A stretch of DNA of 64,000 nucleotides, taken from positions 1-64,000 of the forward strand of contig NIVC01000309.1 of NCBI GenBank assembly GCA_002269645.1, given 5' to 3'. Source of the stretch: Macrostomum lignano (taxonomy: Eukaryota). Positions within the stretch are counted from its first letter, which is position 1. Every line of letters starts with the position of its first letter. The translations under genes were made by a program, and so were the position numbers. Shown piece by piece: positions 3,582-16,783 of the stretch. Below the pieces are notes generated by a model that made no database searches, was not told the origin of the DNA, and worked only from the letters and a program-made list of their open reading frames with translations.

Positions 3582-4585
3582 CTGCATAAGAAAGAAGGAA
3601 GATCGGGATAATAAATTTAGGGTGTACTACTTGCATTAGCACGCAAAACAAGTGTACGCTGGTGTGTACTCGTACGGATATTGAGAAATCAGTCTGCTAA
3701 TACATAATACATACTTGATTTTTATGGAAATTTTTAATTTTGAAGAGTCAAGCTCGTACTGAAGGTCGTTAAATAATTTTCTCTTTTGTTTAGCTAACAT
3801 GTACTTACTATTATAGTAACTAAAAACGTATATTTCAAAGCAACATTCATACTGATTGTACAAAAAGAAAAGAGCATGTGAGCAAAGTAAAAAAGTGAAA
3901 TAATTGTTAACCAATTGCGATTTGACACAATAAATTTGAGCTGTGAGTAACGATTGTTGCTTCTAAAAGCAGTCTCACTGACACAAAACAACAATCTAAG
4001 GTGATCCAGTCGATCAAGTGCCAACACTTTGCAAAAGGAACCTGACATACTTTGTACTACATGTGTTGTCGACCCTGTGAATTGGTCGGTCGGTCTGAAC
4101 TGGATAAAGGAATGTAAAATGAGAAGCGCATGGAGCTGCAGGGGACGGCGACTTGGCGCAGATTAGCGGGGAACGAACCAATTTAATCCGGGGACCAACT
4201 GAGATCCGCACGCCCGACCCGAAAATCCAATCCCCATGCAGTTAGGAGCCTCATCGACCATTAAGGTTGGCGAATTAAATGTACTATTGCTCCACCGAGA
4301 GAGACTGGAATGAATTTTTGTCAAAGTACTTTTACCGTTCGATAGTTTTTAAGTCTGACAAAAAATATCGGTGTTCAATTATGAACAGAACTACAAGGGT
4401 AAATTTACCAGCCCTTGAATTGCACAGAAACAGCTATAGCTACAGATATTTATGCTCGAACAAGAGTAAAGGGCTCTGCAAACTTCTGCGGAACATCACT
4501 ACAACACTAGCCTAGTATCACAAGAGCAAGAAAAAATACTGATTTCCTAAATACATAAATTTGGCCAACAGATGTCATTCGTGTC

Positions 4586-5797
4586 TCATATCAGCCTCTC
4601 CTCGTTTGGCGGCCGGAGAATGTCCTGCATGCTTTGCTGTCCCGACTTGCCGCTGCCCAGCTCCCGATCGCTGGGCTTATAAACGCCTGTGTCCTTTCGT
4701 CGGTCGCGTATCACTTTAAAAGCTAAGCCAGCTGCAGTTCCGGCTAGCAGAACAAGTAGCAAACCCACTACTAGGCCGACTACCAGACGACTGTCTGCGG
4801 CTGGAGCCTGAGTTCCAGCCTCCACAGGCTCCGTTGTCTGAGCAGTCTGTGGCATCGTTGTCAGAGGCGGAGTCGTCGTTTGCAGAGTCGTCGCTAGCGG
4901 AGTCGTCGCTGGCGGAGTCGTCGCTGGCGGAGTCGAACAGTTGGCGCCGCTGTAACCGTCGGTACAGTTACAGGAGAAAGTCTCCAACGAAGCGATGCTA
5001 GTGCAGAATCCGTGCCCTGAGCAGGGCTCCAGGCCGATCGTGCTTGTGTTGCAGAAATCTCTAGCCTTTAAGCAAAAGTCGCCCCCGTAGCCGGTAGCGG
5101 TGCAGTTGCAGCTCGAGTGGAGGTTCCACTGAAGCCGGGGCAAGCAGCTGCCCCCGTTTGCACAGATGCAGGGGTCCTCATGGCAGCCAGCCAAAACACC
5201 GGAGCCATTCAATAGCTGCACATTCGTCACCTCGGCAATGGCATTATCCGAGGACTCAGTGACCGTCGCATTGGCAAGGCAACCTCTTAGTCCGTCGGTG
5301 CCATTAGTACCACCAAAGGTCATCACAGTCCAGTTGAATATCGCCGTTAATGCTGTCGTCGGATCTGCAAATACACGTAGCAGTTCAGCTCCATCCAAGC
5401 TGACAGTCACGTCGCTAGCATTGGCATCGAGTCTGATGCTGACAGAGTGCCAGTATCCGTCAGTAAGATTAACAGCAGCTTGGTTGCGACTGCCATTCGA
5501 AGGCCAATCAGCAGTCAGATGCTGGAAAGTTATGCCGAGGACCAGTTGCAGCATGCTGTTGGTTTCATTGTCCGTCGACGGTGCGTACAAGCCCCAGATG
5601 GACCAAGCCGGGTGTGACGCTCGAAACTCGAATGTTGCGACAGTTTCAATCGGGATTGCCGAAGCATTTTGGCGCGTCAGATTTGCAACGCCACTGACGT
5701 TAAATGTTGCGACATCGGCCGAAGCATTGGAAATTGGCTGTGTAACCAGAAACAGCACGCCGAAGCAGAAATACAGAAAAAATCGTTGAAGAAACAT
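4586..5797 (-). CDS. crb: Short intronless Crumbs-family protein (403 aa), nested in a Cav1 intron on the same strand
   Basis: Signal peptide; one LamG-like domain (LTDGYWHSVSI...FGG...LRGCL); two EGF repeats; Thr/Pro stalk; TM; tail with GVYKPSDRE (GxYxPxxxE FERM-binding motif) and C-terminal EERLI PDZ-binding motif. Confidence 0.88.
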   Translation of the reverse strand: MFLQRFFLYFCFGVLFLVTQPISNASADVATFNVSGVANLTRQNASAIPIETVATFEFRASHPAWSIWGLYAPSTDNETNSMLQLVLGITFQHLTADWPSNGSRNQAAVNLTDGYWHSVSIRLDANASDVTVSLDGAELLRVFADPTTALTAIFNWTVMTFGGTNGTDGLRGCLANATVTESSDNAIAEVTNVQLLNGSGVLAGCHEDPCICANGGSCLPRLQWNLHSSCNCTATGYGGDFCLKARDFCNTSTIGLEPCSGHGFCTSIASLETFSCNCTDGYSGANCSTPPATTPPATTPLATTLQTTTPPLTTMPQTAQTTEPVEAGTQAPAADSRLVVGLVVGLLLVLLAGTAAGLAFKVIRDRRKDTGVYKPSDRELGSGKSGQQSMQDILRPPNEERLI

Positions 5798-7142
5798 GCT
5801 TCTGCGCCTAACAATTCAACCGAAGCAAAAAAAGTCGTCAGAGCTATAGTTGCACGAAACAGTTGTTACGAATCTATCGCTTCAGTAGGCCGTAGTTGAG
5901 GTAAGCTATATAATCGCTTTCAAACTTGCTCGTTTACTCTCATGCTTAATTAGACGCAGGCTGAAGCATAATAATAGCTGCAATAGCCACGAAGTTCCAC
6001 GAGTGTCGTATGTCAGCACGGGCACGATAGAGAGTAGTAGTAGTACGTCTCTAGTCACGGAGGAAATGCGCCACACTGGTCGCCTTTTATAAGGTACGCT
6101 CGCCGTGGCCTTTCTCGCGAACAGCTAGCTGCTTTCCTTTGTATACACTTCTCTGTATACTCACTATAGCAGCCTGGCCTTCTCTCCAGACACTCACTAA
6201 TGCAGGGCAGAACTGACTGGACGGATTTGGCGAGCGAATCTCTCTTGCCAAAAGTTCTGTTGGTCATGCAGTACTCATGTCGTTTTTTCTTAATGCTTCT
6301 TTTTATTTTCACTCCTGCTTCGCAGAGAACACGGCCCACAGGGAAAGTTTTCTCTCGTTTTAGCTCATGTAAAATCGTTTTTATATCGGGCTGACGGACG
6401 CGGTCGATTGGGCTGAGTTAGCTGAGCAGAGCCGGGAGGTAGGGCTGAGAAGCTTTATGGGTAGAGAAAGGGAGTTGGCCTGGAGGGTTATTGGATGAAA
6501 GAACTGCAGCTTAGGGCGTGGAGATGTATGAGCTCATTCGCTTTCCTCCACTCTCTCCTGCCCTAACCGTCTCACCTGCTGAGCACATCCAGATGGTTTC
6601 TGTCAGACTTAACTGCGCACGACAATAGGCTCTATAATTTCGCGGGGGAGTGCTCGTTTCTCACCCTCAGGCCAGCGTGCATGGTCGCTTGGCGTGCATA
6701 CATGAGCATACATACGGAATGAGGCGCTTTGCATTCAGTGGCAGACTGAACTTGAGTAAGCAAATGATAGAAGAGATAATTATTTTCAGTGAAAAGGATG
6801 ACAGTTTTCTGTTGCAACCACTGCCTATTCTTTACTCCTTAATATCTGTATAATATGACATTAAGTAATTAAAGCTATCAAGCAAGATAAGGAGTCAGAG
6901 GCAAGCACGAGGGACTGTCAAAACAGTTGTGCATATACACGATAATGCAGACACGTTATTAGGAGGTGGGGCAGCTATGTACATGAATGGGGCAGTGGGG
7001 CTTCACCGCATTTTAACTGCTTTAACCCGTGCCCTAATTTAACAGCGCACATGTATAAACATTCTTGCTTGCCTAGATTGACTAAGGGACTGGAGAGTGG
7101 CATAATTTTAACCATTGTCAATTATAGAAGCTTGTCTAGCAG

Positions 7143-8031
7143 ATGTATCAAAGTCGAAGCCTTCTGAGGCAGCGCTCGCTACTTCAACGATCGCTATGCA
7201 CAGCAAAGTCGGGCACCCCAAACGGTCGATTCGACTGCGCAGTGATCGGTGCCGGACACAACGGCCTGGTGGCTGCCGCCTACTTGGCTGGCGCTGGTAA
7301 GAAAGTCTGCGTACTTGAACGGCGTCATGTGATCGGTGGCGCTGCCGTAACTGAAGAGATCGTGCCCGGGTTCAAGTTCAGCCGCTGCTCCTACGTGCTG
7401 AGCCTGCTGCGCCCGAAGGTGATGGAAGACCTTCAGCTAGAACGGCATGGCTTGGTCGTGTACACTCGCGACCCCAGCTCCTATACGCCTCTACTGGAGC
7501 CCGGGTCGAAAACTGGAGCTCAGTCACTTCTACTGGGCCGCGACCACGCGCGGACGCACAGGTCCATCGCCGCATTTTCGCCTCGCGACGCCGACCAGTT
7601 TGTCCGCTACGAAGAGCAGATGGGCCGCCTGGCAGCCAGTCTGGAGCCGCTGCTCGATAACCCGCCGTTCAACTTGCACCACCTGCTGGCATCAAGCGGA
7701 CTTCGCGCGAAAGCAAGGGAACTCGAACGGGCTAGACCGCTTTACCGGATGGCGTCTCAGCTCGGACCGCAGCTGCTGCAGCTCTACGAGCTGCTCACTG
7801 CGCCAACTTCTCGAATTCTGGATCGCTGGTTCGAGAGCGAGCCTTTGAAGGCCACTCTGGCCACGGACAGCGTCATCGGAGCAATGATTTCGCCGGACAC
7901 GCCTGGCAGCGGCTACGTACTACTGCATCACGTGATGGGCGGAGTGAACAATATCCCAGGAGCATGGGGCTTTGTCCACGGCGGTATGGGATCTGTTAGC
8001 AAAGCTATTGCCGAAAGTGCTCAAGCAAGAG
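7143..8031 (+). CDS. PYROXD2: PYROXD2-like FAD oxidoreductase (phytoene desaturase family), exon 1; nested antisense in a Cav1 intron
   Basis: FDCAVIGAGHNGLVAAAYLA Rossmann motif, ERRHVIGGAAVTEEIVPGFKFSRCSYVLSLLRP; Arg/Ser/Leu-rich N-terminus resembling a mitochondrial presequence; G|GTATG donor. Confidence 0.92.
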
Positions 8032-8117
8032 GTATGAAACTACAGGAACCAATTGCTATTAACGAGTAAACTTTGAAGCTCAATTTGATTTAAAACGCTT
8101 AAATCGTTTCTCCTCAG

Positions 8118-8561
8118 GTGCCAAGATATTCACCGATGCTCCGGTCTCTCATATCAAAGTAGTAAATGGCAAAACAGAAGGCGTTGTTCTTGCCGACGGC
8201 AGCGAAGTAGATGCGCCCGTGGTGTTGTCGAACGCCACGCCGAAGGTGACGTTCGAAAACCTGCTGCCGCCAGACTCTCTGCCCGAGGACGATTTTCTGG
8301 CCAGCGTACGGCGAATCGACTACGCCTCGCCAGTGACCAAAATCAACGTGGCCGTTTCCCGACTGCCAAACTTTCTCGCCGATCCCAATCCGGTGTCGGG
8401 CGACTGCCCGGACCATTTTCACGGCACCATTCACCTCAACTCCGACAGCTGCGCCATGATTGATACGGCCTACCGGGCCTGTCAGCAGGGCGGCTACGCT
8501 GATAGGCCGGTCATCGAGATGACTGTGCCCTCGTCGCTTGACGATAGTCTAGCTCCAAAAG
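8118..8561 (+). CDS. PYROXD2: PYROXD2-like exon 2
   Basis: ctcag|GT GCC AAG...VVLSNATP...YASPVTKINVAVSRLPNF...PVIEMTVPSSLDDSLAPK G|GTACG; phase 1 to 1. Confidence 0.9.
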
Positions 8562-8815
8562 GTACGCGGAAGATTGAGCATTTCTATACTAATATACTGC
8601 AGGTCTGGCTGGTTGACTGTCTCCAGAACTTGTTCTAGAAGCGTCCCAGAGGACTGTGCAAGAGAAGTTAGGCTTATCTGAAACGCCTCCCAAATGATTC
8701 AACACTGCTCATAGTTGACTTTATGAACCATGGAAACCACGTTTTCAATTAGCTTTTAATGCGTCTTCTCTCTGTAGGGGGTTTACCGGATAATCCTCGT
8801 CCTAATTACCAATAG

Positions 8816-9201
8816 GTGCACACGTGGTCCAGCTATTTACTCAGTACACACCAAAGCTGCTGCATGGCAAGCGGTGGACGCAGGAGGACAAGGACCGCTA
8901 CACCAGGACCGTGTTCAAATGCATCGACGACTACGCGCCCGGTTTCTCCGCCTCGGTTGTTGGCAGCGACATGCTGACTCCGCAGGACCTAGAAGAGACA
9001 TTCGGTCTCACCGGAGGCAACATCTTCCACGGCGGGATGTCGCTTGACCAGCTTTACTTCATGCGGCCAACCCCCGAGTACTGCGACTATCGCAGTCCGA
9101 TCGGCGGCCTCTACCTGTGCGGCAGCGGGGCTCACCCTGGTGGCGGCGTCATGGGTGCACCTGGACGGCTGTGCGCTTTGGAAGTGCTCAGAGACAGCTA
9201 A
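8816..9201 (+). CDS. PYROXD2: PYROXD2-like exon 3
   Basis: aatag|GT GCA CAC: [11 protein letters not shown]...[11 protein letters not shown]...[19 protein letters not shown], stop TAA. Confidence 0.9.
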
Positions 9202-9570
9202 ATGATGATCACTATTGAAGCCATTCATTTTGAATTCAATAGTTTCCTCTATTATTGAACCTCTATTTCTATTGGAATGGATTTTTTCGGTAATTATAGC
9301 AATATTTAGAATTATTCTATTTTTCAATAAGCAGATGTTAGAATTCGAAATTTATTTAATACATTTTAATAATCACTATACGAACGTAGGAGCAGTCTCA
9401 AAAATCCTTGTCTGAAATCGGTAATATTTTTATGGCTGATCCTGTAGGGTCAATACCAAACTACATCATAAGAATCAGCTGTTCTTGTCTTCAAAATGAA
9501 TCAGTGAATGAATGTATCTTGTCAGCCAAAAAGTAAATCATACAAAACAACAGGTCTGCAATGACGCAGA

Positions 9571-10011
9571 CTACAGTTCTTTCTTCTCAGCAGCGTCCTC
9601 GCTGCCAGGCTGCTTGGCGGCCTTCTTCGCCGCTTCGTCGGTGCCTTGAAGCGTCGGCAGCTCGTCGTACTCGCCCGGCTTGTGCGCCGCCTCGCAGGCG
9701 GAGTTGCACCGGGCGAACTCCTCCGCCAGCTCGTGCTCGCTGACGCACTCGCGCCGGCAAACCTGCAGCTTGCTGAGCCGCTTTGCGCGCATGATTTCTT
9801 GGAAAGCCTCCTCGGCTTCGGCGCGCAGCTTCGGATCCTCCGTGTTCATCAGCATCATGCGGTCGATCTCAGGGCCGGCCTTGGGGTCCTTCTTCATGAA
9901 GTCCATGTTGACGTCATCGGCGTCCGGGTAGAAGGCCAGAGCTGGGAGCGACAGCTGCGTGAGCAGCACCAGCAGCACCGGGAGGGTTTCTCTTCTAAAA
10001 GCCGGCCGCAT
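9571..10011 (-). CDS. Small secretory-pathway protein (146 aa; signal peptide, CX3C-X12-CX3C, C-terminal KKEL), nested in a Cav1 intron
   Basis: MRPAFRRETLPVLLVLLTQLSLPALA signal peptide; GC-rich coding-like composition against AT-rich flanks; ends AEKKEL-stop; minus-strand AATAAA at 9351-9356. An upstream in-frame ATG exists at 10059. Confidence 0.75.
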   Translation of the reverse strand: MRPAFRRETLPVLLVLLTQLSLPALAFYPDADDVNMDFMKKDPKAGPEIDRMMLMNTEDPKLRAEAEEAFQEIMRAKRLSKLQVCRRECVSEHELAEEFARCNSACEAAHKPGEYDELPTLQGTDEAAKKAAKQPGSEDAAEKKEL

Positions 10012-10645
10012 TTCCAAGACAGACGGGTATATCAAACTTTCAAATCGGGTAGCTCGCATGTTGGACCGGTTTTCAGCATTTTTATACCGGCTTGCCAGCT
10101 GATCTCAGTGTCCAATTGCAACGCGACCCGTCATGCCACATCAACACAGAGCAGGTGCGCCGTTCGATAGGAGAACTTTGGGACATTTAGTTTTCCCAAT
10201 TGCAGTCTGTTCAAACACGCTGGTTCTCTATTTGATTTCAGTTGCTTCGATTCTGTCACAATCCAGCGCATTGTTCAACCATAAAGGTAAACACACGCCG
10301 ATTGTGTTTAAACAGTTCACTTCGTATTACTTGACATTGAGCGAGAGTTATTTATGCAAGCCACCCATAGTCCATAGGGATTTCAAGCTGCCAGATTTTA
10401 AGCAGAGCCACCATTGACTTAGAAGCCTTAGCGCTCGATAATATCAGCATTTTCCAAGTCAATTTTTTCGATTTTCTAACTCAGTATACTTGAAGACGTC
10501 TGTTTCCAGGACTTTGATAAGTAATTCGGCGCTCACGATTTATACTAATAGCTTCCTCAAAATGCATGTTTAGTCTTCTACATAATGTGCAGCCAGTTCT
10601 TCATATCATCTACAAAGCCGCTCCCCATTTCGGTTGGGCTGGATA

Positions 10646-10787
10646 GGCTTTTCATAGCGGCCATAGTCTATGGCCAGCCTTGCCGGGCTGGAGGGGCTTT
10701 TCATAGCGGCCATAGTCTATGGCCAGCCTTGCCGGGCTGGAGGGGCTTTTCATAGCGGGCATAGTCTATGGCCAGCCTTGCCGGGCG
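10646..10787. repeat. Three copies of a 49-bp unit containing palindrome GGCCATAG-T-CTATGGCC
   Basis: Units start at 10646, 10695 and 10744. Confidence 0.85.
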
Positions 10788-10900
10788 TGGAGCTATTTAT
10801 AGAACTCTATGTTCGGCAAGGAACGGAGTTTTTTATTGCTTCGGCGCGAAGAACAAAAAAACGACGCGGGCTAATAACTAACCATGGAAAAACTGCTCAC

Positions 10901-11198: not shown

Positions 11199-11506
11199 CC
11201 GGGCCAGCCCTCGAATGTGGAGGTGGCAAATAGAGACAGCATGGCGTGAGCCACGTCATCAAAATTGAGATCCTCATTCTCCCATTCTCTCTCCTTCATC
11301 ACGGGCTTGGAGATGTCGTTGTCTTTGTAGAAAATGAAGTAGCCCTGGCACTCTGCTTCCGTGGACTTGGATCCGTCGTTGCACTTTCTGAACTTGCCCT
11401 TGAACAGCTGAACACCGATGACGGCGAACATGAACTCGAGCAGGAAGGTGACCAGCATGATGTTGCCGATGCTCTTCACCGCTACGATCACGCATTGTAC
11501 GACGTG
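11199..11506 (-). CDS. Cav1: Cav1 exon 15 (IIIS5 and pore loop)
   Basis: [39 protein letters not shown]...[10 protein letters not shown] (filter Glu); GTTAGT donor, phase 2. Confidence 0.95.
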
Positions 11507-11703: not shown

Positions 11704-11791
11704 CTTGAGCCCCTTGGCCCTGTTGATGGCGCGCAGCGGCCGCAACACTCGCAGAACGCGAAGAATTTTCACGACCGAAAATGTGTCCGAA
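11704..11791 (-). CDS. Cav1: Cav1 exon 14 (IIIS4)
   Basis: [29 protein letters not shown]|GTGAG; phase 2 to 0. Confidence 0.95.
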
Positions 11792-12137
11792 CTGAAAATT
11801 GAAGTACGACATGAATTTATCAATACGTGAGACACAAGTTCACCTTTTTTAATTTAAAATCTTTTTAAAAGTACATTATGCACACGCTTTGAACTTTAGA
11901 ATGCATCAGCTAGCTAAAGCATCTACCTGTGACTATGCAAAAACTGCTGCAAACAAGAACGGACCAAACTTTCCGCCACCACAGGCTAAAAACTTTTGAT
12001 TTGATTTCTGCTCAGTTCACGAAATTGCAATCGCTGGCAATTCTTCATGTAACACTTTTTCTTTCATTCACTGGCAAAGCAAACAAAGGTGTATAGCATT
12101 CCGCAGTCCACAGCTTTGAGAACTGCGGTGCACTCAC

Positions 12138-12244
12138 GGCGAGAATAGGGACATTAAAGCTACAAACACAACCAGCAGGTCCAACAGGTTGAATGTGGAC
12201 CTGCAGAAGGAGCCTTTGTGCAGGATCACACCGTAAGTGACCAC
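12138..12244 (-). CDS. Cav1: Cav1 exon 13b (IIIS2-S3 linker/IIIS3), mutually exclusive variant B
   Basis: gcacag|[37 protein letters not shown]|GTGAGT; 107 nt, phase 0 to 2. Confidence 0.88.
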
Positions 12245-12559
12245 CTGTGCATTGTATTGTGCATTTGCTTATATATCAATATTTGTTAGATGGCTGAACA
12301 TACTAAACTCAATAATGAAGCTACTCAACAAAATAATTAAGAAACAAAAGTAATTATTAAACATAATAATTTATCACTAGGCACAAAAAGGACGACATAG
12401 ATTGAACAAAATTGAGTGCATAAGTAATGTAATGTTTAGCGAAAATGTGGGTTACATGTAGGTTAATGATCACTAAAAAATAATATGTTACTTTACACCA
12501 ACCTGTGACCTTAGTTTAAAAATTAATTAGAAACAAAAATGTCCTCAGGCTAGACATGG

Positions 12560-13580
12560 GACTCCTCAGACTAGAATTGGGATTCCTGAGCCTATAGAGT
12601 TAGGATTCTAGATTGTAGTCTAGACTAGATTGTAGTCCAGAGTTGGGATTCCTCAGACTGGAATTGATTCCTTACATTAGAGTTGGGATTCCTTAGATTA
12701 GAGTTGAGATTCCTCAGACTGGATTTGGGATTCCTTAGATTGGAGTTGCGATTCTTTAGATTAGAGTTGGGATTTCTTAGATTTGAGTTGGGATTCTTTA
12801 GATTAGAGTTGGGATTCCTGAGACTAGAGTTGGGATTCCTCAGACTAGAGTTGGGATTCCTTAGATTAGAGTTGGGATTCCTTAGATTGGAGTTGGGATT
12901 CCTCAGACTAGAGTTGGGATTCCTTGGATTAGAGTTGGGATTCCTTAGATTGGAGTTGGGATTCCTCAGACTAGAGTTGGGATTCCTTGGATTAGAGTTG
13001 GGATTCTTTAGATTAGAGTTGGGATTCCTGAGACTAGAGTTGGGATTCCTCAGACTAGAGTTGGGATTCTTTAGATTAGAGTTGGGATTCCTTAGATTGG
13101 AGTTGGGATTCCTCAGACTAGAGTTGGGATTCCTTGGATTAGAGTTGGGATTCCTTAGATTGGAGTTGGGATTCCTCAGACTAGAGTTGGGATTCCTTGG
13201 ATTAGAGTTGGGATTCCTTAGATTGGAGTTGGGATTCCTCAGACTAGAGTTGGGATTCCTTGGATTAGAGTTGGGATTCCTCAGACTGGATTTGGGATTT
13301 CTTAGATTGGAGTTGCGATTCTTTAGATTAGAGTTGGGATTCCTTAGATTGGAGTTGGGATTCTTTAGATTAGAGTTGGGATTCCTGAGACTAGAGTTGG
13401 GATTCTTTAGATTAGAGTTGGGATTCCTCAGACTGGATTTGGGATTTCTTAGATGGGAGTTGGGATTCTTTAGATTAGAGTTGGGATTTCTTAGATTGGA
13501 GTTGGGATTCCCCAGATTGGAGTTGGGATTCCCCAGACTGGAGTTGGGATTCCTTAGATTGGAGTTGGGATTCCTCAGAC
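12560..13580. repeat. 21-bp minisatellite (GAGTTGGGATTCCTCAGACTA) between exons 13a and 13b
   Basis: Direct inspection. Confidence 0.95.
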
Positions 13581-13788
13581 AATACTGCACAATATTTACA
13601 ATCCGGCTATATTAATTTAGACGCCTCAGTCAGACTTTAAAATAAGCACACCGGAAACTTATTGTCCAGTAATAATAATAAATAAAGTAGATACACAAAC
13701 GAAAAGAAATAACAGCAAAAGCCCATAGAGACACGCGACACCCAGCAGCTGAGAGCAGTCGATTTCAGCTGGATGTCTGGCAACCTAC

Positions 13789-13895
13789 TCAAGAAAGAAT
13801 GAGGCTAAGCTAGTGAGCACGACCAGAATATCGAGCAGGTTGAAGGCCTGCCGACAGAAGGAGCCGTCGTGCAGCACGAGTCCGTAGGCTGTCAC
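13789..13895 (-). CDS. Cav1: Cav1 exon 13a (IIIS2-S3 linker/IIIS3), mutually exclusive variant A
   Basis: ctacag|[37 protein letters not shown]|GTAGGT; 107 nt, phase 0 to 2. Confidence 0.88.
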
Positions 13896-14075
13896 CTGTA
13901 GATTACAGTTTTTGCATTGAGTTCGCTGGGGATGGCTAGTCGCTTATGACTGACTACTCAACAGTTCAACTGAATTTTTTTTAAACTGTGCCATCGATGC
14001 TATAGTCCTACTAATAGTAGATTACGTACTCATGGGATTTTCGCATTTAAACAGCTATTTAGGAGCTAGGAATAC

Positions 14076-14255
14076 GGGGCGGGTTTTAGCCTAGTGGTTA
14101 GAGCGTCGGACTCGCGACTGAAAGGTCGGGAGTTCGATTCTAGACCCAGTCGGAATAATTTGTGTCGTTAAGCAAGACACTTAACTCTGCATTGCTTCAG
14201 TTCACCCATTAGCTGGGGTAATTGAGGGTGTGTGTGGCGACCCCCCCCCCCAGTT
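14076..14255 (+). mobile_element. tRNA-derived SINE
   Basis: A box tagcctagtggttag and B box ggagttcgattc, followed by tgtgtcgttaagcaagacacttaac body typical of SINE cores; no complete acceptor stem. Confidence 0.7.
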
Positions 14256-14411
14256 CTTGGACTGAACAGCCGTACGCAGCCTTCAGATGCGCCGCGCAAT
14301 AGCTGCGGCTGAGCTGTCGGTTGCACATCTGCCCATTAGGACAGGTGTAATCAATTATTATTATCATTATTACGAGCGTAGCCATAGAAATAAAATAACC
14401 GTTTGTCTTAC

Positions 14412-14471
14412 CTTCAAGATGATTTCTATAGTAAATACCGTGGTGAAGAAGTAGTCAAATTTGTTTAAAAT
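14412..14471 (-). CDS. Cav1: Cav1 exon 12 (IIIS2, 60 nt)
   Basis: ILNKFDYFFTTVFTIEIILK; tag/GTAAG; same size and content as vertebrate CACNA1C exon 21/22. Confidence 0.92.
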
Positions 14472-14632: not shown

Positions 14633-15900
14633 TTTGCGTCTTGGTGGGCGCCCCTGTCTCTTGGTGGGCGCCCCGTCTCTTGATGGGCGCGCCTGTCTCT
14701 TGGTGGGCGCCCCGTCTCTTGGTGGGCGCCCCGTCTCTTGGTGGGCGCCCCTGTCTCTTGGTGGGAGCCGCTGTCTCTTGGTGGGAGCCGCTGTCTCTTG
14801 GTAGGCGTCCCTGTCTCGTGATGGGAGCCCCTGTCTCTTGGTGGGAGTCCCTGTCTCGTGGTGGGAGTCCCTGTCTCTTGGTGGGAGTCCCTGTCTCTTG
14901 GTGGGAGTCCCTGTCTCGTGGTGGGAGTCCCTGTCTCTTAATGGGAGCCCCTGTCTGTCTCTTGGTGGGAGTACCTGTCTCTTGGTGGGCGCCCCTGTCT
15001 CTTGGTGGGCGCCCCTGTCTCTTGGTGGGCGCCCCTGTCTCTTGGTGGGTGCCCCTGTCTCTTGGTGGGCGCCCCTGTCTCTTGGTGGGTGCCCCTGTCT
15101 CTTGGTGGGAGTCCCTGTCTCGTGGTGGGAGTTCCTGTCTCTTAATGGGAGCCGTCTGTCTCTTGGTGGGCGCCCCTGTCTCTTGGTGGGCGCCCCTGTC
15201 TCTTGGTGGGCGCCCCTGTCTCTTGGTGGGCGCCCCTGTCTCTTGGTGGGCGCCCCTGTCTCTTGGTGGGCGCCCCTGTCTCTTGGTGGGTGCCCCTGTC
15301 TCTTGGTGGGCGCCCCTGTCTCTTGGTGGGCGCCCCTGTCTCTTGGTGGGTGCCCCTGTCTCTTGGTGGGCGGCGCCTCTCTGTCTCTTGGTGGGTGCCC
15401 CTGTCTCTTGGTGGGCGCCCCTGTCTCTTGGTGGGCGCCCCTGTTTCTTGGTGCGCGCCCTTGTCTCTTGGTGGGTGCCCCTGTCTCTTGGTGGGCGGCG
15501 CCTCTCTGTCTCTTGGTGGGTGCCCCTGTCTCTTGGTGGGAGTCCCTGTCTCGTGGTGGGTGTTCCTGTCTCTTAATGGGAGCCCCTGTCTGTCTCTTGG
15601 TGGGAGTCCCTGTCTCTTGGTGGGCGCCCCTGTTTCTTGGTGGGCGCCCCTGTCTCTTGGTGGGTGCCCCTGTCTCTTGGTGGGCGCCCCTGTCTCTTGG
15701 TGGGCGCCCCTGTCTCTTGGTGGGCGCCCCTGTCTCTTGGTGGGCGCCCTGTCTCTTGATGGGCGCCTCTGTCTCTTGGTGGGCGCCCCTGTCTCTTGGT
15801 GGGCGCCCCTGTCTCTTGGTGGGCGCCCCTGTCTCTTGGTGGGCGCCCCTGTCTCTTGGTGGGCGCCCCTGTCTCTTGGTGGGCACCCCTGTCTCTTGGT
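14633..15900. repeat. 20-bp minisatellite (TCTTGGTGGGCGCCCCTGTC)
   Basis: Direct inspection; preceded by a CAGTGGCGTACGCAGGG hAT-MITE-like end near 14577 whose partner end I could not find. Confidence 0.95.

Positions 15901-16455: not shown

Positions 16456-16783
<328 letters not shown>

Follow-up and report, generated by a model that had tools for sequence, protein, structure and literature searches.

The window analysed here is a 64,000-nt stretch of a Macrostomum lignano contig, and it carries a Cav1 (L-type) calcium channel alpha-1 gene in which two similar exons of equal length follow each other. The question raised by this locus is whether the two exons are alternatives for one segment of the domain III voltage sensor, and whether both are in use.

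We identified the gene from its exons on the minus strand of the window. It starts at about 40.5 kb and leaves the window at the low end, within repeat IV. Further Cav1 exons were located from Cav1 channel fragments retrieved with the A-isoform peptide, and exons of repeats I to IV were found on this strand. When the exons were concatenated to 1108 residues and used as a query, M. lignano models named "voltage-dependent L-type calcium channel subunit alpha" were by far the best matches, and the window exons match M. lignano models at 97-100%. All named top matches are L-type or "muscle calcium channel alpha-1". In a PDB search, Cav1.1, Cav1.3 and Cav1.2 scored 253-279 bits, compared with 190-198 bits for Cav3 (T-type) and 183-187 bits for Cav2 (N-type). 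The full-length model P0241 (1973 aa) shows several Ion_trans matches plus GPHH and Ca_chan_IQ matches. The pore motifs TMEGW (I), TGEDW (II) and TFEGW (III) are present in the window translations, the pore loop of repeat IV lies outside the window, and a beta-subunit binding motif is readable in the I-II linker. Four repeats, pore glutamates with a beta-binding motif, and closeness to L-type channels mark a Cav1 alpha-1 subunit, and all were observed. The sequence supports the identification as a flatworm Cav1 channel gene.

The exons and introns around the pair are listed in Table 1. Exon A has the splice sites ...tctacag/GTGACA...CTTGA/gtaggt and exon B has ...gcacag/GTGGTC...TCGCC/gtgagt, so that both combine a CAG/G acceptor with a GT donor. 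The exons are identical at 21/35 residues and 62/107 nucleotides, and their differences fall on codon positions 1, 2 and 3 in the numbers 16, 6 and 21. A tblastn search of the window with A returned B at E = 1.6e-11 and no other comparable match, which excludes chance similarity. The length, CAG and GT sites, phase 0 to 2 and residue identity given for the two exons by the first-pass annotation were all reproduced. It had also placed the pair one exon downstream of the pair known as 21/22 in vertebrates. This is correct, as A follows the 60-nt IIIS2 exon, which is single here. The exons equivalent to vertebrate 8/8a (IS6), 21/22 (IIIS2) and 31/32 (IVS3) have one copy each, both in the window and at the loci of the paralogues, in agreement with what had been noted for the latter two.

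Table 1. Features around the alternative exons in the window. Exon letters are in capitals and intron letters in lower case.
Feature	Position	Strand	Length (nt)	Remarks
IIIS2 exon, constitutive	14412..14471	-	60	encodes ILNKFDYFFTTVFTIEIILK; tag/ATT...AAG/gtaaga
Intron IIIS2 to A	13896..14411	-	516	not conserved between paralogues
Alternative exon A	13789..13895	-	107	phase 0 to 2; 35 residues + GA
Cryptic donor GT inside exon A	13819..13820	-		after nt 75 (GTC/gtgctc)
Intron A to B	12245..13788	-	1544	mainly 21-nt x 45 minisatellite (12639-13579)
Alternative exon B	12138..12244	-	107	phase 0 to 2; 35 residues + CC
Intron B to IIIS4	11792..12137	-	346	
IIIS4 exon, constitutive	11704..11791	-	88	S3-S4 linker end + IIIS4
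Next constitutive exon	11199..11506	-	308	IIIS5 + pore loop

The introns of the gene have features of their own. Minisatellites fill the channel introns at 12639-13579, 14639-15900, 16458-16783 and in much of 30-38 kb, with units that include 21 nt x 45, 20 nt x 62 and AGAC x 82. At about 14080-14150, in the intron between IIIS2 and A, the plus strand holds a tRNA-like stretch, GGCGGGTTTTAGCCTAGTGGTTAGAGCG...GTTCGATTC, with a G run before it. It is probably a remnant of a tRNA-derived SINE; ARAGORN and Rfam made no call there. Between the IIIS6 and IVS1 exons lies an intron of 7.3 kb (3585-10873) with three nested genes, each of which is annotated in the GenBank loci that correspond to it. On the minus strand these are a 162-aa ORF (10059-9571) and a 403-aa EGF-repeat membrane protein (5797-4586); the plus strand holds, from about 7143, an FAD/amine-oxidase-like gene.

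We translated the possible combinations of the two exons. With A alone or B alone, the frame stays open through IIIS4 and the 308-nt exon. As the exon length of 107 nt is not divisible by three, mRNAs with both exons or with neither are out of frame. Double inclusion gives a stop 6 codons into B; skipping of both shifts the frame of IIIS4 and gives a stop 106 codons on, in the 308-nt exon. These premature stops bear out the earlier statement that both or neither shifts the IIIS4 frame. A channel can therefore come only from mRNAs that include one of the two exons. Frame incompatibility is thus present as a mechanism that would enforce exclusivity. Steric hindrance is excluded as its basis, as the intron between A and B, which measures 782-3034 nt across the loci described below, is far too long. 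The mRNAs with both exons or neither are assumed to be removed by nonsense-mediated decay (NMD).

We compared the window with four other loci of assembly GCA_002269645.1 (L001-L004), so that five contigs were covered. L002 and L004 are copies of the window gene, with introns about 5% diverged from the window and less than 1% from each other. L001 (Mlig000343) and L003 (Mlig027667) are two older paralogues, identical to the window gene at about 76-77/84 positions in an adjacent conserved stretch. In the following, their exons are called A' and B' (Mlig000343) and A'' (Mlig027667). At all five loci a single IIIS2 exon is followed by A, then B and then a single IIIS4 exon, and A and B each measure 107 nt and have AG/GT sites. 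Every locus therefore has neighbouring homologous exons that agree in length and phase and carry their own splice sites. Residue identity is 24-33/35 within an exon type and 18-23/35 between types. Because identity within types exceeds identity between types, the exon duplication predates the gene duplications. Several residues are fixed by type (A vs B): position 2 is Thr vs Val/Ile, positions 16-17 are Gln-Ala vs Ser-Thr, position 23 is Ile/Met vs Leu, and positions 28-29 are Thr-Ser vs Val/Ile-Ala. The three Macrostomum paralogues are closer to one another than to either trematode Cav1, which makes the Cav1 triplication lineage-specific. The order of events would be exon duplication first and then triplication of the Cav1 gene in the Macrostomum lineage.

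These loci also showed other differences. The minisatellite array between A and B varies the intron between 1.5, 2.0 and 3.0 kb among copies of the window gene. In the Mlig027667 copy, a 1.88-kb AT-rich element (L003:26853-28732) with 27-nt terminal inverted repeats and a TAGAG duplication interrupts the IIIS4 exon (...KILR/VLRVLR), and the GenBank model ends just upstream. A second candidate tandem pair of the window gene lies past the low end of the window, at L002:41164-41256 and L002:41341-41487. It encodes the repeat-IV turret and the start of IVS6 (...SSIAYPYFISFYMLCSFLV/gtgagt and ...QLVGYPYFISFYIICSFLV/gtaagg). The two copies are 59% identical over 32 residues, and the RNA-based model takes the downstream one.

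An assembly artefact or a dead duplicate could also produce a second copy of an exon. In its favour, the introns are full of tandem repeats and the assembly is known to be redundant. Against this, the pair recurs at five independent loci, each on a contig of its own, and its conservation is type-specific; we regard this explanation as extremely improbable.

To quantify selection on the two exon types, we used Nei-Gojobori counts and Fisher tests across the three paralogues. A-type pairs have pS of 0.56-0.81 and pN of 0.06-0.18, and B-type pairs have pS of 0.72-0.75 and pN of 0.10-0.15. Fisher p values for pN vs pS within types range from 1e-4 to 3e-13. Window B vs B' gave pN 0.10 and pS 0.75, and A' vs A'' gave pN 0.06 and pS 0.81. 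In blastn between paralogues the exons align and the introns are not alignable. As synonymous sites are saturated while replacement sites are conserved, both exon types are kept by purifying selection in the three paralogues, judging from these substitution counts. A copy silent since the gene duplications could not keep its protein, length, frame and splice sites with saturated synonymous sites. A and B match the single exon of arthropods, molluscs, cnidarians and vertebrates about as well as they match each other, so neither looks decayed. On a recent scale, the window and L002 (about 5% diverged) have 0 differences in A and 1 in B per 107 nt, the latter a non-synonymous Phe27Ser; introns differ by 5.2% overall and by 2-3% in the vicinity of B, which gives the comparison little power.

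Evidence for splicing came from gene models. The GenBank annotation of Mlig_3_7 used RNA-seq only (StringTie, TACO, de novo transcriptome, TransDecoder; PMC5730564), and because of this its model junctions reflect RNA. With the TACO isoform fraction set to 0.75, minor isoforms are lost (PMC5730564). A single model at each locus is therefore to be expected even with alternative splicing, since isoforms below 75% of the major one were discarded. For the window gene, PAA65287.1 (Mlig000393.g1, 1973 aa) and PAA49886.1 run IIIS2-A-IIIS4 with A as the sole member of the pair, and these junctions are exactly those of isoform A in the first-pass annotation. In the paralogue model PAA72656.1 (Mlig000343.g1), IIIS2 is joined directly to B' and A' is skipped. 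This model then enters the following intron, where GA/gtga reads Glu-stop. As it ends inside that intron, PAA72656.1 represents a transcript that is truncated or not fully processed. In PAA70953.1 (Mlig027667.g1) the A-type exon is present, and the reading continues into the intron behind it. The RNA-derived models thus have A only (window gene) or B' only (paralogue, in a model incomplete at its 3' end), and none has both. Queries with the 85-aa A isoform, the 1108-aa concatenation and the 232-aa B isoform found no Macrostomum transcript-derived fragments in the protein collection, and no transcript or read turned up in which the window gene uses exon B.

A different structure appears in UniProt/WormBase. 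A0A1I8JEW8, A0A1I8GVU8, A0A1I8HR08 and others contain 25 codons of A and all of B, and the paralogue models A0A1I8GT10 and A0A1I8JFF6 are the same kind of chimera. A0A1I8HR08 was reproduced exactly from the window by cutting A at GTC/gtgctc after nt 75. Taken literally, these models mean that the first 75 nt of A and all of B enter one mRNA through a cryptic donor, in frame, and insert 25 residues. However, this donor is the GT of a Val codon, is off-consensus in the following bases and is used by no RNA-derived GenBank model. A protein made in this way would contain the S2-S3 loop and half of S3 twice, at odds with a voltage sensor of four helices. Furthermore, the last 10 codons of A, which such a splice leaves unused, are kept by selection (A' and A'' both read FTSIISFCL). 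We consider this splice very unlikely and judge the ab-initio chimera to be an annotation artefact. On this judgement, the 25-residue insertion in the UniProt/WormBase models is spurious and affects at least two of the three paralogues, and GenBank has one isoform per locus. Phylogeny, structure modelling and comparisons of anthelmintic targets need these protein models to be corrected first.

The RNA-based models could also be read as a division of labour, in which each paralogue uses one copy constitutively (A in the window gene, B' in Mlig000343) and the unused copy is a decaying silent relic. One exon type per model is indeed what was seen, with A in two copies of the window gene, B' in Mlig000343 and A'' in Mlig027667. 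The sole recent change in B of the window gene is non-synonymous, and human CACNA1S and CACNA1F offer a precedent (PMC9741552). However, conservation is no lower in the copies that would be unused than in those in use (B vs B', A' vs A''), all copies retain 107 nt, an open frame and AG/GT after synonymous saturation, and the annotation dropped isoforms below 75% of the major one. We therefore consider such a division unlikely. Our preferred reading, which we hold to be very probable, is that the exon for the IIIS2-S3 loop and IIIS3 was tandem-duplicated before the M. lignano Cav1 triplication, and that the 107-nt copies are spliced mutually exclusively to give two isoforms. The first-pass annotation had taken the absence of stops and frameshifts as a hint that both copies are used. 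With purifying selection on both types and RNA-built A-only and B'-only junctions, this inference is now much stronger; the B' junction belongs to a paralogue and not to the window gene.

We searched the introns for signals that might govern the choice between A and B. Both introns are GT-AG. The pyrimidine fraction of the A and B acceptors is 0.36-0.55, compared with 0.59-0.73 at the constitutive IIIS4 acceptor, and such pyrimidine-poor acceptors would fit regulated exons. An inverted-repeat search for competing RNA structures of the docking/selector kind in three paralogous regions found none at comparable positions. Inverted-repeat matches in L003 were rejected as a docking pairing, as they belong to a transposon. 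No conserved intronic elements were found by blastn between paralogues, where exons alone align, and Rbfox-type GCATG, CU-rich and CA-rich motifs have no shared placement between paralogues. Trans-acting splicing factors on two weak acceptors may set the choice of A or B, cell-type- or stage-specifically.

To locate the exon in the protein, we aligned it to rabbit Cav1.1, where it covers residues 851-886. We also modelled the voltage sensor of repeat III in its exon B form with AlphaFold (AF2; mean pLDDT 75.7). In this model the exon supplies the last turn of the IIIS2 helix with its residues 1-4, the S2-S3 loop with the next eight and the S3 helix with residues 17-34, so that it takes in all of IIIS3 and the first linker residue. 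The junction residue lies in a five-residue S3-S4 loop. Alignment and model agree with the earlier assignment to the IIIS2-S3 linker and IIIS3. The codon split at the donor is completed by the first base of the IIIS4 exon, and gives Asp with A (GA+T) and Pro with B (CC+T). The Asp/Pro difference had been presented as a property of the pair. It holds for the window gene; as a general feature it does not, since L001 and L003 have Glu with either exon.

The two predicted isoforms of the window gene differ in 14/35 residues and in the junction residue. Consistent differences between A and B are found in the S2-S3 loop (RQA vs RST) and in outer S3 (TS vs V/I-A). The type-specific residues would lie at the cytoplasmic start of S3 and in the outer third facing the S3-S4 linker, where polar Thr-Ser would be exchanged for Val/Ile-Ala. 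We infer that the voltage dependence or the kinetics of voltage sensor III may not be the same in the two isoforms. This gating difference, like NMD and a cell-type-specific choice, is suggested by likeness to Cav1.2 exons 31/32 and similar cases (PMC5748662, PMC9741552). M. lignano has transgenesis and RNAi, so the roles of the isoforms of voltage sensor III are testable in vivo.

We looked for the duplicate in other animals. In a Cav1 locus of Paragonimus kellicotti (L005), IIIS2, one IIIS3 exon and IIIS4 extend across 9 kb, and no further IIIS3 copy appears at E < 1. A contig of Schistosoma margrebowiei (L006) has no copy between IIIS3 and IIIS4 and is short upstream of IIIS3. The search of flatworm loci proposed in the first-pass annotation covered this Paragonimus locus and, in Schistosoma, the stretch from IIIS3 to IIIS4. 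Among the arthropod Cav1 isoforms retrieved, none from the same species differ in the IIIS3 exon. A Logan contig (L007, SRR30767271_15727) contains a Cav1 fragment in which a single exon encodes both IIIS2 and IIIS3, with no second copy, and the IIIS3 part resembles A at its start and B at its end. If the contig comes from a flatworm relative, the sequence before the duplication could have been similar to it; the contig was left out of the evidence.

A tree of the 35-residue exon gave an A clade at 48% and a B clade at 58%, with A and B grouped in 0.4%; a tree of this length is too weak to date the duplication. TSIIS is shared by A and one trematode Cav1 exon, and VALVSF by B and a schistosome paralogue, with bootstrap support of 12% and less than 1% for these links to trematode genes. 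One explanation is that the A/B pair goes back to a Cav1 gene of an early flatworm and is older than the split between the Cav1 paralogues of the parasitic species, and that each of these paralogues then retained one copy. We give this a small chance. If true, Macrostomum preserves the ancestral alternatively spliced state, and the trematode TSIIS/VALVSF split mirrors the complementary retention in human CACNA1S and CACNA1F. The exon duplication is likely, though not proven, to be independent of other lineages. Independence had already been proposed for this pair. The single copy in Paragonimus and the arthropod isoforms speak for it; the age of the duplication, which predates the three-way gene duplication, and the failure of A and B to group in the tree keep it short of proof.

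Tandem exon duplication is a known route to channel diversity. Human and fly Cav genes have undergone ten independent tandem exon duplications, all of different exons (PMC9741552). Exons 31/32 (IVS3) and 21/22 (IIIS2) of CACNA1C and CACNA1D are mutually exclusive and tissue- and stage-specific in vertebrates (PMC5748662, PMC9741552). In an insect sodium channel, mutually exclusive exons lie in IIIS3-IIIS4 (PMC3805903). Insect para IIIS3-S4, fly cacophony and Ca-alpha1D, and Cav2 37a/37b are likewise recurrent, independent tandem exon duplications. Unlike the M. lignano pair, none of these reported Cav and Nav cases is the IIIS3 exon of Cav1. The literature has no mention of such a pair in Macrostomum or of an alternative IIIS3 exon in L-type channels. 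The pair is genuine and previously undescribed, and the kind of channel diversification that it represents is already well known. It adds a further case of voltage-sensor exon duplication, with Cav1 IIIS3 absent from the ten human and fly events.

Human CACNA1S and CACNA1F retained complementary exons after gene duplication (PMC9741552). The trematode distribution of TSIIS and VALVSF is what retention of this style would resemble, and the link to A and B rests on few residues with no tree support. Unlike CACNA1S and CACNA1F, all three Macrostomum paralogues retain both copies. The closest likeness is to vertebrate 21/22 and 31/32, which like A and B are equal-length tandem exons in Cav1, each pair swapping one voltage-sensor helix. 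The M. lignano pair is IIIS3, directly downstream of the 60-nt equivalent of 21/22 (PMC5748662), and in another lineage than the vertebrates. When exons 21 and 22 are co-included in vertebrates, the channel is non-conducting (PMC5059693, PMC5748662). Co-inclusion of the 60-nt exons 21 and 22 is in frame, whereas that of the 107-nt exons A and B is out of frame.
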